Shown here piece after piece: positions 36,345 to 39,300 of a DNA stretch of 64,000 bases. The notes under the pieces were generated by a model. The model saw nothing but the letters and a program-made list of their open reading frames with translations. It had not been told where the DNA came from and did no database searches. The translations under genes were made by a program, and so were the position numbers. Position 1 is the stretch's first letter; every line of letters starts with the position of its first letter. Source of the stretch: Octopus sinensis (Eukaryota); the NCBI RefSeq assembly GCF_006345805.1, contig NC_042999.1:74400001-74464000 (forward strand). The letters run 5' to 3'.

Positions 36345-39300
36345 ACTCGTCGTGACAAGACGTACTTTTTATAGCTCCTGTCAGTAACTAACCAAAGAAG
36401 CATATTTCAACTCAATTTAACTCAACTCAACCCAAGCCAACATAAACTCTCCTTGTTTTTAATCTCAAAACTTTTGAACTCTACAATCCTACTATACTAC
36501 TCTTTTACTACCATCGGAGGATAAATTTATACAAATCTATATACAACCTGAAGAAAGAAATACAACCCAAAACTAAATACTAAACCCAAGACTAGTTCTA
36601 AAACTAGTCCCGTGAGTACAATTCTTTTTCTTGATCTGTATTAAACACACCGCTCATCCTGATTGTACTAATTACACTGAACTCTCACACACACAAGCCA
36701 CGAATTTCCGAGTATATCGACACAAACTTTTCAATGGTGTATTCACTATTTTACATCAAGCCATCAATAACTGGTGTACATATACATATACACGCATACA
36801 CATACATATATATATTACACAACACTACCCCACTGAATATGGCCAATAATTTTCAAAAACGCCGCTGGGTTGAAAATGAAATTACTGCAATGATTAACGC
36901 TTGGTTCATCCATCACAACGAAGCTAATGTTTACAGTAAAATAACTGAGGACTTAGCCAAAAAATCCTTTCACAGATCTGTAAAACAGATCGAAAATAAA
37001 ACAAAAAAAATTGTTAGAATATTTCCTATTTTTCACTAGCACATGGCTACACTAGAAGCCATTCTTGCCAATGAATCCAGTACACCAAATGACCAAATTC
37101 CAACAGGTCAGGGGTCACTTCAACAGCAACAATCAACTGACCTACTTCCATTGACAACAGCACCTGATGAACCAAGTCAAGTTTCACTGCTGCTACAGCA
37201 ACAAAAACAACAACAACAACAACACTCTAATACTACCACTAGTCAAGTTTCAATGCTGCTACAACAAAAACAACACTCTACTACTACTGCTACCGCCAGA
37301 ATAGAAAAATCACTACTACATCCACATAAAACTATCTGCCATTACTACTCTCAAGGCAGCTGCAGATTTGACCACATTCTGGCAAGCCAGAACCCACCAT
37401 CACAAAATCAACAAGCTGCTTCTAACACTACTGCTACTACTGCCAGAATAGAAAAACCACTACTACAACCAAATAAAACCCCCTGCCGTTACTATTCTAA
37501 AGGCAATTGTAGATTTGGCCCCAGCGGCTCAAACAACAATGGACGCTGTGCTTTTTCCCATCCTACCATATGTCATAGACTTGTTATGGGCACCTGTCTA
37601 TATAGTATAACAGGAAAAAATTGCCCCCACCTCCACCCCAAATACTGTCCTAAATACAGAATCCATGGTTCTGATCCTAAATACAGATGCACAAAAGGCA
37701 ATGGATGCACCTTATTCCATCCTAAACTGTGTCAAACTTCTGTCTCACAACGGATGTGCCTGAACCCAGAATGCAACCACCACCATCTGAAGGGCACAAA
37801 ACGATCACAGAATAAATATAAACAGGAATAGAGGAAATCTAGGACAACAACAAGAACAAAATACAACCACGTTTCCCCTCCTACAATCAAACAACGTAGA
37901 CAGAACCATGAAAAAACACCAAATAACGCCAACATGAAATATGTATCCTCTGACCAAGTGGCAAACCAAACAAGTAACTCTTTTTTACTGACATACCTAG
38001 AAAATATGAAGGCCGACCTAAGCCAGGAGATCCAGCGAGCTATCACCAACCATCTATGCAAATCACAAGGACCACTCACCTATTACCAACTTCCCTTACC
38101 TCGACATTCCTGTTAAATGTACGTGGCATCAACCCATCAATTATTGCCCCAAAATGGAAGATCCCATATATAGAGTTGGCTTGCCGAAATGGCACATTGC
38201 TTCCTTTTCTTTATCCTTACCGAGACTCACCTGAACAACACCCATATGGACGCAGAGGTGAAAATAAAAGATTTCACCATTGTTCGTGCGGATCGCACAG
38301 ACCGAAATAAGGGAGGGACAGCCATCTTCATCCATGACTCCTTTTCACTTGATGCCAAGGACATTTTTTCCAATGGCTACTGTGAATTGGTATCACTATA
38401 CAACAAAGCCAAGGACATAACCATTGTTGGTCTTTACAGGCCTCCCCAGGCACCTCTAAAGTACTTTGAAGAGTGCCTTAGCAAAGTCAAGTCCTTCCTT
38501 CGGAAGTACCACTCCGCAAACATACTAGTGATGGGTGATTTTAACCTCCCTCATGTGAACTGGCCCACAAATACTCTGAAGTTAGGCAAGTGCTCTACAT
38601 CAGATAGAGCAGCAGCAGAACTGCTCTTTAATCTGATGGATGAGTATTTCCTGACTCAGCTAGTGCTTGACCCAATGAGACAGAATAAAACGATCTTGGA
38701 TCTGGTATTGACCAATCACTCTAGCTATGTTCACAGTATTTCAGTCGAAAAAACTCTCCTCTCAGACCACGACATGGTACTCTGCAATCTTAATTCCCAA
38801 CATATAAAATCCAAACCAGCCAACCCCACTCCATGGCACCCATTTGACAACATAAACTTCCACAAAGCGGACTGGGGAACAATCAGAAAGGATCTGTCTT
38901 CCATCGACTGGTCTTTTACTCTCAATTCCTCTCATATTGAGACCGCGTGGCAGCACTTTGAAAACATTGTCACCTATACATGCTCTAAACACGCTCCCAA
39001 GAAATCTACTAACACAAACAGAAACTGGCTCCCTAAAAAGAAAAAAACACTCATCAGGCGCATCAAAAGACTCAACAAAAAATCAACCAATTAAAATATT
39101 CCCACACACAACATCCCCATTCAACAACAATGAAAAGACTAGAGCTGGAAAAACTTCATCTGCAGACCAACATGAAAACCTCCATTGAAAATCAAAGAGC
39201 TGTGGAGGAACAATGGGTAATCAAAAACATCAAACAGAACCCAAAAGTGTTCTATCCTTATGCAAATAAGCATAGAACCACTGTCTCACCCATTGGGCCA

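Follow-up and report, generated by a model that had tools for sequence, protein, structure and literature searches.

The LINE copy described here, from a 64-kb stretch of Octopus sinensis DNA (the window), encodes an ORF1 in which a Myb/SANT-like N-terminus precedes a block of CCCH-type zinc fingers. With a second element of the same kind in the octopod Argonauta hians, this Myb-CCCH ORF1 is very likely a property of a LINE lineage. Relatives of the protein usually carry a PHD finger at the N-terminus, and our overall reading is that a Myb-like domain probably took the place of the PHD-bearing region in an ancestor common to the two octopod elements.

Organisation of the element and of ORF1

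The element is a full-length, dead LINE copy of the APE-RT type on the plus strand of the window (about 36344-41145). ORF1 is followed on the same strand by ORF2 (38056-41046), which overlaps the end of ORF1 and encodes an APE endonuclease and a reverse transcriptase (RT), identified with Pfam as Exo_endo_phos_2 (E=4e-14) and RVT_1 (E=1e-29). This succession on one strand is the layout of an APE-type LINE. Two frameshifts disrupt ORF2, near 38165-38177 and 39064-39082, and tblastn searches with the ORF2 of the Argonauta element and of the relative L001 accordingly matched it in three frame segments. The 3' end consists of a hairpin and a short tail unit without poly(A), as in CR1/L2-like elements. 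The element is thus an APE-RT LINE, and its CR1/L2-like label follows from two features, the type of its ORF1 and its 3' end. A further copy was not found in the 64-kb window, which contained only a distant minus-strand RT without a recognisable ORF1. Ten ORFs of the window were searched with Pfam; the matches comprised a LINE RT, a mariner Transposase_1, a PHD finger, an RT fragment and a MAM-like ORF, while the rest gave none.

ORF1 spans 425 codons on the plus strand (36839-38116) and is closed by a TAA at 38114-38116. The original prediction had described a single frame upstream of an APE-RT ORF2 that is broken by TAGs only, and this description proved correct. The frame contains two internal stops, in comparison to 16 and 36 in the other two frames of the region and to a mean of 23 and a minimum of 11 after base shuffling. 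The 101-codon open stretch that holds the Myb part was still open in 2 of 5000 shuffles. Both in-frame TAGs, at 37037-37039 and 37829-37831 of the plus strand, are inactivating mutations. At the first site the aligned Argonauta ORF is open, and across the second the relatives P0001, P0002 and P0007 are open. Since P0001 and P0002 have no stop between the zinc fingers and the 'SFLLTYLENMKADLS' tail, the second TAG is a mutation in a real ORF1.

From the N- to the C-terminus, ORF1 comprises a Myb/SANT-like domain of about 55 residues, a disordered Q/T-rich linker, the CCCH block and an FLxxL helix. The linker (37040-37483, plus strand) is of low complexity, rich in Q, T, S and L, and predicted to be disordered (pLDDT 40-58). 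The Argonauta protein has at the equivalent place a low-complexity linker rich in T, P and N, which does not align with that of the window. An internal tandem duplication (37280-37523, plus strand) consists of the copies 37280-37376 and 37427-37523, which are offset by 147 nt and share 82% identity over 97 nt. It gave rise to an extra, incomplete finger at 37337-37375 (residues 167-179); in the nearest ORF1 relative, L001/P0001, the duplicated segment is present only once. The four CCCH-type zinc fingers (37484-37804, plus strand) are complete C-x-C-x-C-x3-H units at ORF1 residues 216-241, 245-266, 270-294 and 298-316, are spaced as C-x7-9-C-x4-8-C-x3-H and end in a conserved HxKGTKR motif. 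A Gln/Thr linker with four to five CCCH-like fingers, the first of them derived from an internal duplication of about 140 nt, had been predicted; the analysis confirmed both points, with four complete fingers and one partial, duplicated finger.

The fingers of the window protein remained below the Pfam threshold (best zf-CCCH_4, 18.6 bits versus 24.6). At their Cys and His positions, 81-150 homologues show complete or at least 90% conservation, and the last three of the four fingers form the block that is conserved throughout the family. The CCCH block was modelled by AF2 with a pLDDT of 89-97. A Foldseek search with this model returned 13 non-significant matches (E of at least 0.27, TMt up to 0.55), of which ranks 1-12 were named CCCH proteins (CPSF30, the yeast CPF module with Yth1, ZAP) and rank 13 was an unidentified spliceosome chain. 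The C-terminal amphipathic 'FLxxL' tail (SFLLTYLENMKADLSQEIQRAI; 37979-38044, plus strand) is conserved across the ORF1 family with near-invariant F and L columns, and is present in P0001, P0002 and the Argonauta ORF1.

The Myb/SANT-like N-terminus

The N-terminal domain (36860-37024, plus strand; ORF1 residues 8-62) probably has a true Myb/SANT fold, as far as this can be judged from its sequence. The Myb_DNA-bind_4/trihelix pattern originally proposed for this segment was recovered in a Pfam profile search, in which PF13837 matched the window ORF1 with E=4.7e-6. This match is marginal, at 27.3 bits against a gathering score of 27.0 (0.3 bits above), and pairs residues 8-62 with profile positions 2-66 of 89. 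The Argonauta N-terminus gave a sub-threshold match to the same profile coordinates (13 bits, E=0.14). Among 24,736 Pfam models, PF13837 was the top family for the window protein and the sole family at E<=1 for the Argonauta N-terminus. Residues that are invariant between the two proteins (W10, E14, I15, I19, W22 and R46-S47-x2-Q50-I51-x2-K54) correspond to what we take to be the hallmark positions of Myb_DNA-bind_4.

The narrow passage of the Pfam cutoff and the low score of the Argonauta orthologue would also be expected if the segment, while a genuine conserved part of ORF1, were a generic helical module that mediates, for example, oligomerisation or contacts with other proteins, and if the Pfam match were a borderline false positive. 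Single-sequence AF2 predicted one continuous helix over residues 2-61 (pLDDT 84, pTM 0.44), and residues 8-62 of the window protein contain neither Gly nor Pro. Moreover, a PDB sequence search with the Myb profile retrieved no Myb, SANT or MADF structure, but only a spurious match to Kar9 (E=0.47). However, continuous helices are commonly over-predicted by single-sequence AF2, and the Argonauta protein does have Gly and Pro at the expected inter-helix turns. The generic module is also at odds with the first rank of PF13837 in the window and its exclusive rank in Argonauta, over profile positions 2-66/67 in both cases, as well as with the series of invariant residues from W10 to K54. We consider it rather unlikely and retain the Myb/SANT assignment.

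A sister element in Argonauta hians

The Argonauta hians element, L005, has an intact ORF1 of 407 aa (3944-5167), followed by an APE-RT ORF of 933 aa. A single ORF1 frame encodes the Myb-like N-terminus, the linker, Cys/His motifs ending in HPxGT[KR]R and an FLDLL tail. The Myb parts of the window and of L005 share 31% identity over 74 residues (BLASTP, E=1e-6), and their alignment spans the first TAG of the window ORF1. The local alignment score of 65 was not reached by any of 5000 shuffles (25.8±5.0, maximum 55). In a reciprocal tblastn search of the Argonauta Myb part against the whole window, the top match was at 36860-37066 (E=4e-4). The RTs of both elements, 55% identical, grouped as sisters in a tree of 121 sequences with a bootstrap value of 98/100. 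Because the intact Argonauta sister has the same layout, the Myb fusion is a trait of the LINE lineage and not an accident of the locus. The ORF1 start of other copies had been named at the outset as informative in this respect, and L005, the one copy with an examinable N-terminus, opens with a homologous Myb-like segment.

The window element and L005 are the two Myb-type copies found (n=2); the contigs of the closest ORF1 relatives (L001, L002 and L012/L013) and of the nearest RT outgroup (L008) end before the ORF1 N-terminus. A word-index search of 5.8 billion indexed proteins with the Myb segment alone gave no candidates. The two-sequence Myb alignment yielded 257 pattern matches in JGI metagenomes, none of which was confirmed, and an exact-sequence look-up of the window and Argonauta ORFs showed that they are absent from the collections.

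The wider ORF1 family

An exhaustive HMMER scan with the read-through ORF1 as query identified 1,423 representatives as relatives of the window ORF1. In the best 150 of the 1,423, the top-scoring stretch never began before query residue 125 and for the most part covered the CCCH block plus the tail; none lay in the Myb part, and Myb-only relatives scoring below about 65 bits fall outside these best 150. The family consensus shows a PHD pattern and then the CCCH block. When 105 family members were searched with Pfam, a PHD finger was found in 25, CCCH in 13 (zf-CCCH at E<=0.01, best 7.6e-6) and Myb in none. All outgroup elements examined (L003, L004, L006/7, L009 and L010) have a PHD-type ORF1. 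Pfam detected no PHD finger in the ORF1s of the window and Argonauta. A descent of the Myb segment from the usual N-terminus of the family, as a diverged form of it, was considered and ruled out (hhalign probability of 0.2% against the canonical family).

Judged by sequence comparison, the CCCH block and the tail are the ancestral, family-wide core of ORF1 and the PHD finger is its usual N-terminal module. ORF1s with a PHD finger have been described as 'Type III' (CR1/L2-group LINEs, Jockey superfamily) (Khazina & Weichenrieder 2009; Metcalfe & Casane 2014, PMC4120745). Like these, the window element is an APE-RT LINE with two ORFs and with a hairpin and tail at its 3' end, and hundreds of PHD-bearing ORF1s have homologues of its CCCH block and FLxxL tail. 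It differs in that the PHD finger and the region of about 90 residues before it are missing, with a Myb/SANT-like domain instead. The window and Argonauta ORF1s, being without PHD, are consequently a derived variant and not strict members of Type III. As their CCCH block is the core of a family that normally bears PHD, the change is an exchange of PHD for Myb rather than the mere gain of a domain. The earlier suggestion that a LINE lineage acquired a Myb module therefore holds for the acquisition, which is shared with the Argonauta sister; it does not hold as a simple addition, PHD having been replaced by Myb.

Element ends and flanking sequences

The presumed 5' UTR (36344-36838, plus strand, about 495 nt) is C-rich and G-poor and contains a (TACATA)n run at 36777-36815. 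A skew of C>G and A>T continues from here through ORF2, and the 5' UTR of the Argonauta element, 758 nt long, has the same skew. The two 5' UTRs gave no alignment, with a score no better than that of shuffles, so that the 5' boundary in the window is approximate. The 3' UTR (41047-41145, plus strand) contains a two-hairpin module (41084-41129), followed by GAAAC and a tail unit, ATCTAAGT, which occurs once in the window and three times in Argonauta. It is conserved with positions 8232-8310 of L005, with a fold z of -3.2. The layout of hairpin plus tail repeat is common to the PHD-type relatives, whose tail units measure 8-9 nt.

TA-rich repeats flank both elements. In the window, a TA-rich microsatellite remnant (36304-36343) lies directly 5' of the element as a putative target and has its counterpart 3' of the element, where a (TA)n(TG)n microsatellite extends over 41146-41246. 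Among the PHD-type relatives with visible 3' flanks (n=3), two were not in TA-rich arrays and in the third (TG)n followed. The 12-bp repeat ATATATATATTA (36806/41237) was evaluated as a target-site duplication and rejected as a chance product of microsatellite sequence; the long Argonauta 5' UTR and the TA-rich flank at 36304-36343 fit better with the boundaries given above.

The element ends also bear on whether a 5'-truncated LINE came to lie, by chance and in frame, beside an unrelated Myb fragment from a Harbinger ORF or a host exon. LINEs are often 5'-truncated, a TAG stands between the Myb part and the rest of ORF1, and the (TACATA)n run is located just upstream of the Myb ATG, where the microsatellite-like 12-mer at 36806/41237 may be read as a boundary; the absence of Myb from the 105 scanned family members would fit as well. 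However, the Myb ATG lies 495 nt (window) and 758 nt (Argonauta) inside the 5' ends of the elements, and the strand composition is continuous over the Myb junction. The Argonauta sister has the homologous segment in the same position and frame of an intact ORF1, and the alignment between the two crosses the TAG of the window. Neither a Harbinger DDE_Tnp_4 transposase nor another Harbinger feature was found near the Myb segment, either in the ten window ORFs searched with Pfam or among the listed ORFs of at least 90 aa in 28000-36900. A chance juxtaposition is thus largely refuted and highly improbable, and the initial caveat of an unrelated Harbinger fragment lying in frame was not borne out. 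The Myb part is treated below as belonging to the LINE.

Comparison with known systems

The exchange of ORF1 domains between lineages in a modular fashion is a documented pattern (PMC4120745). That survey of ORF1 modules mentions neither Myb nor CCCH (0 occurrences), and a literature search retrieved no report of Myb or SANT in a LINE ORF1, with Repbase and Dfam outside that search. In R2, N-terminal zinc fingers and a Myb domain bind target DNA upstream of the nick (PMC12503042). Both R2 and the window element join zinc fingers with a Myb-type domain in a non-LTR retrotransposon protein, and R2 is a precedent for Myb-mediated targeting of a LINE. In R2, however, a canonical c-Myb-type domain stands beside C2H2-type fingers in the single, RT-containing polyprotein of an RLE-type element, whereas the window element has a Myb_DNA-bind_4-type domain beside CCCH fingers, which are of the RNA-binding type, in a separate ORF1 protein of an APE-type element. 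The PDB sequence search with the Myb profile detected no sequence relationship between the window Myb and that of R2. TRAS/SART elements of the R1 clade have a Myb-like domain, too.

The best and only Myb-type Pfam match of the window protein, marginal as it is, leads to the PF13837 proteins, namely the Myb-like ORF of PIF/Harbinger, plant trihelix proteins and animal MSANTD-type proteins. PIF/Harbinger differs by its DDE_Tnp_4, for which no counterpart was found near the Myb segment of the window. The CCCH block resembles the tandem CCCH fingers of CPSF30/Yth1 and ZAP in finger spacing, with fold matches that are non-significant (E>=0.27). It differs from them by its own conserved signature (HPK, FHPK and KGTKR), which is absent from the survey PMC4120745.

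Origin and possible function

In the reading we favour, the ancestor of the window and Argonauta elements would have swapped its PHD-bearing N-terminal region for a Myb-like domain, and the Myb-CCCH architecture would then have been kept while the RTs diverged to 55% identity. The swap would most plausibly have occurred by replacement of the 5' end. Possible routes are the in-frame insertion of a 5'-truncated copy behind a first exon that encodes Myb and a template switch of the RT at the 5' end of the RNA.

LINE ORF1 proteins are the least understood component of retrotransposition, and the roles of their accessory domains outside L1 are mostly guesswork. From the established role of CCCH fingers, the CCCH block would bind the LINE RNA, while the tail helix may aid the self-association of ORF1p. 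The established roles of PHD and Myb/SANT domains suggest that the N-terminal module could tether the RNP to chromatin. For the PHD finger, this would proceed via histone H3 tails; for the Myb-like domain, via DNA, or via histone tails as SANT domains do. Tethering by the Myb-like domain would bias the sites of integration. It is possible, and we propose it tentatively, that DNA or chromatin tethering by the Myb-like domain influences targeting. A more specific version, in which ORF1p would bind particular DNA sequences through its Myb-like head and thereby direct this APE-type LINE into TA-rich microsatellite DNA, appears distinctly doubtful.

The TA-rich flanks of both copies could be explained just as well by tail-microhomology priming, which leaves room for a DNA-binding function in self-regulation rather than in target choice. 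The Myb-like domain might then bind the DNA or the promoter of the element itself, or it might attract or escape chromatin silencers of the host. The analogy with MADF/trihelix transcription factors and with PIF/Harbinger Myb-like proteins, which in Harbinger bind the ends of the transposon itself, points in this direction, as does the location of the domain in ORF1p and not in the target-contacting enzyme. On the other hand, the 5' UTRs, which share no alignable sequence, yielded no recurring motif as a candidate binding site, and the domain took the place of a PHD finger, which is established as a chromatin reader and not as a promoter-binding module. Self-regulation seems rather improbable.

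Under the proposed swap, sister lineages combine the same core, putatively RNA-binding, and the same enzyme with either a PHD finger or a Myb/SANT-like domain at one position. Such a natural exchange is an argument that, in this type of ORF1, the N-terminal slot houses a module for contact with chromatin or DNA, and it opens this idea to testing. The CCCH block, conserved and widespread with 1,423 representatives, is unnamed in the ORF1 survey (PMC4120745), and the repertoire of ORF1 modules is extended beyond RRM, CCHC, PHD, esterase and coiled coil. The octopod elements may offer an APE-LINE counterpart to the Myb-guided targeting of R2. If the steering into TA-rich DNA were true, it would be the first target choice encoded in a LINE ORF1 protein instead of the endonuclease/RT protein, and the exchange of a histone-reading PHD finger would have given rise to it.

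Myb-like N-terminus and reading frames of ORF1

Residues 8-62 of the window ORF1 matched Pfam Myb_DNA-bind_4 (PF13837) over profile positions 2-66 of 89, with E=4.7e-6 and 27.3 bits against a gathering score of 27.0. The predicted Myb/SANT profile match was thus found, and by its Pfam score the assignment is marginal. AlphaFold with single-sequence input returned one long helix for this segment, a model that is uninformative about the fold. A profile search found no sequence relative in the PDB, and a sensitive local phmmer comparison with all 154 retrieved proteins gave no match. 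No donor of the domain was identified by a word-index protein search, among the best 150 of 1,423 HMMER matches or in a JGI metagenome scan.

ORF1 occupies 36839-38116 (+) as one frame of 425 codons ending with TAA at 38114-38116, interrupted solely by TAG codons at 37037-37039 and 37829-37831. The remaining two frames contain 16 and 36 stops (base shuffles: mean 23); of 5000 shuffles, 2 left the 101-codon stretch containing the N-terminal part free of stops. Further 3' on the same strand, Pfam identified an endonuclease of the APE type (Exo_endo_phos_2, E=4e-14) as well as a reverse transcriptase (RVT_1, E=1e-29), and translation and Pfam together bore out the original prediction of ORF1 parts in one frame, separated by TAGs, upstream of an APE-RT ORF2. 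The first TAG is a mutation in a once-continuous ORF, because the alignment with the N-terminus of an Argonauta hians relative spans it; the second is a mutation in a genuine ORF1, because the relatives P0001, P0002 and P0007 run unbroken from the fingers to the 'FLLTYLENMKADLS' tail. Mapping with relatives' proteins divides ORF2 into three frame segments, separated by frameshifts near 38165-38177 and 39064-39082. With ORF1 carrying two nonsense mutations and ORF2 two frameshifts, the window copy is dead.

The ORF2 frame overlaps the end of ORF1 at 38056-38190, with comparable sites at 5080-5416 of the Argonauta locus (L005) and at about 1000-1100 of the closest relative (L001). In Argonauta the first ATG comes after the conserved ORF2 N-terminus (FLLNxxGxxxS...), and in L001 no ATG precedes this segment. 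As this conserved N-terminus precedes the ATG and the two frames overlap, the sequences suggest that ORF2 initiation may be unconventional, e.g. by reinitiation or frameshifting.

The canonical ORF1 of the family

Four complete C-x-C-x-C-x3-H units were located at ORF1 residues 216-241, 245-266, 270-294 and 298-316. An internal duplication (37280-37376 versus 37427-37523, 82% over 97 nt, offset 147 nt) gave one extra, incomplete finger (CHYYSQGSCRFDH), in agreement with the predicted repeat of about 140 nt; the duplicated segment is single in L001 (P0001). The expected four to five CCCH-like fingers therefore stood as four complete and one incomplete, but the Pfam CCCH profiles stayed below threshold (best 18.6 bits vs 24.6).

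Relatives of ORF1 were sought by word-index search and by an HMMER scan that exhaustively covered 1.84 billion representatives, which yielded 1,423 at E<=0.001, of which 355 reached E<=1e-10. For none of the best 150 of these 1,423 does the top-scoring stretch begin before query residue 125, and most such stretches lie within about 240-405, the CCCH block and C-terminal tail. In alignments of 81-150 members the Cys/His columns are near-invariant, with the consensus CxxYxxGxCxHGxxGKxCxxxHPKxCxKxxxHGxxxxxGCxxGxxCxxFHPKxCxxSxxxxxCxNxxCxxxHxKGTxR preceded by a PHD-finger pattern and followed by a conserved 'FLxxL' motif. Pfam assigned a PHD finger to 25 of 105 long members, CCCH families to about 13 and a Myb family to none. 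When AlphaFold was given 81 family rows, the Cys/His block reached a pLDDT of 89-97 and the Q/T-rich linker one of 40-58, the latter indicating that the linker is probably disordered. Foldseek against the PDB placed tandem CCCH RNA-binding proteins at ranks 1-12 (CPSF30, the yeast CPF module holding Yth1, and ZAP), with a spliceosome chain at rank 13; none of these matches was significant (E>=0.27). The canonical ORF1 of this LINE group therefore comprises an N-terminal region, a PHD finger, a linker, the CCCH block and a tail helix. It matches the PHD-bearing 'Type III' ORF1 of CR1/L2-group elements (PMC4120745), and the CR1/L2-like placement of the window element derives from ORF1 type and 3' end. 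The three-finger block at 37571-37804 (signature HPK...FHPK...KGTKR) is kept in the 1,423 ORF1 representatives and is not named among the ORF1 modules of that survey (PMC4120745).

A sister element in Argonauta hians

Since the 64-kb window holds no second copy of the Myb-type element, and the contigs of the closest ORF1 relatives end before the ORF1 N-terminus, the search was routed via the reverse transcriptase. The best named match to the window RT ORF was P0163 of Argonauta hians (55% identity), and neighbour-joining of 121 RT sequences grouped the two as sisters (bootstrap 98/100). The Argonauta locus (L005, GCA_054771915.1) has an intact ORF1 of 407 aa at 3944-5167 and an APE-RT ORF of 933 aa (5416-8217; frame open from 5080). 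Its ORF1 starts with MTESGKINSRTWKDHEISTIINTWSELNEKGFTSLIHISNELFPLLKGRSRSQIQSKVRLIIQHFKLIFPHINKLSKIL, followed by a T/P/N-rich linker, two Cys/His motifs ending HPxGT[KR]R and the tail FLDLLKITQKL.

The two N-termini matched in BLASTP with E=1e-6 and 31% identity over 74 residues, and their local alignment score of 65 compares with 25.8±5.0 in 5000 shuffles (maximum 55). In the reciprocal tblastn search of the entire 64-kb window, the Argonauta segment had its top match at 36860-37066 (E=4e-4). PF13837 was the sole Pfam family reported for the Argonauta N-terminus, at the same profile coordinates and with 13 bits, far under threshold. Between the two elements the Myb segment is 31% and the CCCH block 27% identical; the linker is unalignable. 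All other relatives with a visible N-terminus (L003, L004, L006/L007, L009 and L010) have a PHD-type ORF1. That the Myb segment is a diverged form of the usual family N-terminus was rejected, because profile-profile comparison with the canonical family gave a probability of 0.2%. The Myb-CCCH ORF1 accordingly held up as a trait of a LINE lineage (n=2 copies, window and L005): the sister copy begins with a homologous Myb-like segment in an intact frame.

Element boundaries and surroundings

TA-rich repeats at 36304-36343 and 41146-41246 bracket the window copy, which accordingly measures about 4.8 kb, some 495 nt of it 5' UTR. The Argonauta element, with a block of one (AT)n(AAAT)n satellite on either side (L005 2740-3185 and 8311-9410), is about 5.1 kb long with a 5' UTR of 758 nt. 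In both, a C>G and A>T strand skew runs unbroken from the 5' UTR through ORF2 and flips at both ends; the Myb start codon thus lies well inside either element. The original prediction had named an unrelated Harbinger fragment lying in frame by chance as the competing explanation. Such a chance juxtaposition is effectively excluded by the homologous Myb-like head in the intact Argonauta ORF1, by the position of the start codon inside both elements, and by the neighbourhood of the window element, in which no Harbinger-type transposase was found, only a mariner fragment and other LINE pieces.

The 3' UTRs are recognisably conserved: GGTGGTGCTATTARGTTAGMCATGGCCTGG is common to both elements, followed by a second hairpin with differing stem sequences, GAAAC and the tail unit ATCTAAGT, present three times in Argonauta and once in the window. 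PHD-type relatives share this hairpin-plus-tail-repeat design, with units of 8-9 nt. The module (window 41084-41145; L005 8236-8310; L010 4905-4965) consists of two adjacent hairpins, GAAAC/TAAAC and an 8-9-nt tail unit, and is probably an RT recognition element. Its second stem varies in sequence between elements with pairing kept, and the tail units (ATCTAAGT, ATCATAGG, ATCCAAGGT, ACCCAAGGT) are tandem in relatives and single in the window. A SINE- or LINE-like 3' end of the same design (L005 2500-2745, …GGGCTGAAACATTTTAAAACATTAAAACAT) sits directly upstream of the satellite flanking the Argonauta LINE.

Other features surround the window element. A distant LINE of the same broad group (29505-31719, -) has an RT 36-46% identical over three ORFs and no recognisable ORF1 upstream, and a mariner-type transposase fragment (Transposase_1, E=5e-23) lies at 33103-33393 and 32682-33125 (-). 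An interspersed repeat of about 260 bp (about 69% identity between copies) abuts the LINE 5' side at 36047-36310 and recurs in opposite orientation at 47784-47511, 46106-45929 and 837-706. Adjoining the 3' side of a long (ACAT)n/(ACATAC)n block (42218-42646), the region 42772-43487 (+) holds a PHD-finger ORF (E=1.6e-5) and, after it, an overlapping 154-aa ORF (43023-43487, +) with no Pfam match at E<=0.001; this region may represent a piece of a further retroelement. An RT fragment (RVT_1, E=1e-5) occupies 45231-45959 (+), and an ORF at 54773-55318 (-) weakly resembles a MAM domain (E=5e-4) and may be an exon of a host gene.

A proposed module exchange

On the best-supported interpretation, an ancestral element would have exchanged one module: a Myb/SANT-like domain took the place of the PHD finger and the N-terminal region before it, with the CCCH core, the tail, ORF2 and the 3' module all kept. 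This new form would have persisted while two descendants diverged to 55% RT identity. CCCH fingers bind single-stranded RNA. By domain knowledge, the CCCH block of ORF1p may do likewise, the tail helix would probably serve self-association, and the N-terminal slot could contact chromatin or DNA. Recognition of target DNA by Myb plus zinc fingers has a precedent in R2 elements, although there both reside within the RT-containing protein of an RLE-type element (PMC12503042), and here they reside in ORF1.

TA-rich microsatellite arrays surround both Myb-type copies (n=2). This is no more than a hint that targets are chosen; tail microhomology is an alternative, and repeat growth from the element's tail could likewise produce this setting. 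The Argonauta element has the same 22-26-nt (AT)n(AAAT)n array on each side. Among PHD-type copies, L009 and L010 have no such TA-rich array on the 3' side, and a (TG)n run follows L004.

The ORF1 modules in a survey of the Jockey superfamily are CCHC, RRM, PHD, esterase, coiled coil and zf/lz; Myb, SANT and CCCH are absent from it (PMC4120745) and likewise from a 2026 CR1 survey and the octopus LINE paper. Searches of the full-text literature, as distinct from Repbase and Dfam, found nothing relevant on Myb or SANT in a LINE ORF1, in line with the original prediction, which knew of no such description. Modular evolution of ORF1 is well established, and the interest of the Myb-type LINE lies in a natural exchange of PHD for Myb within a framework that is otherwise conserved.
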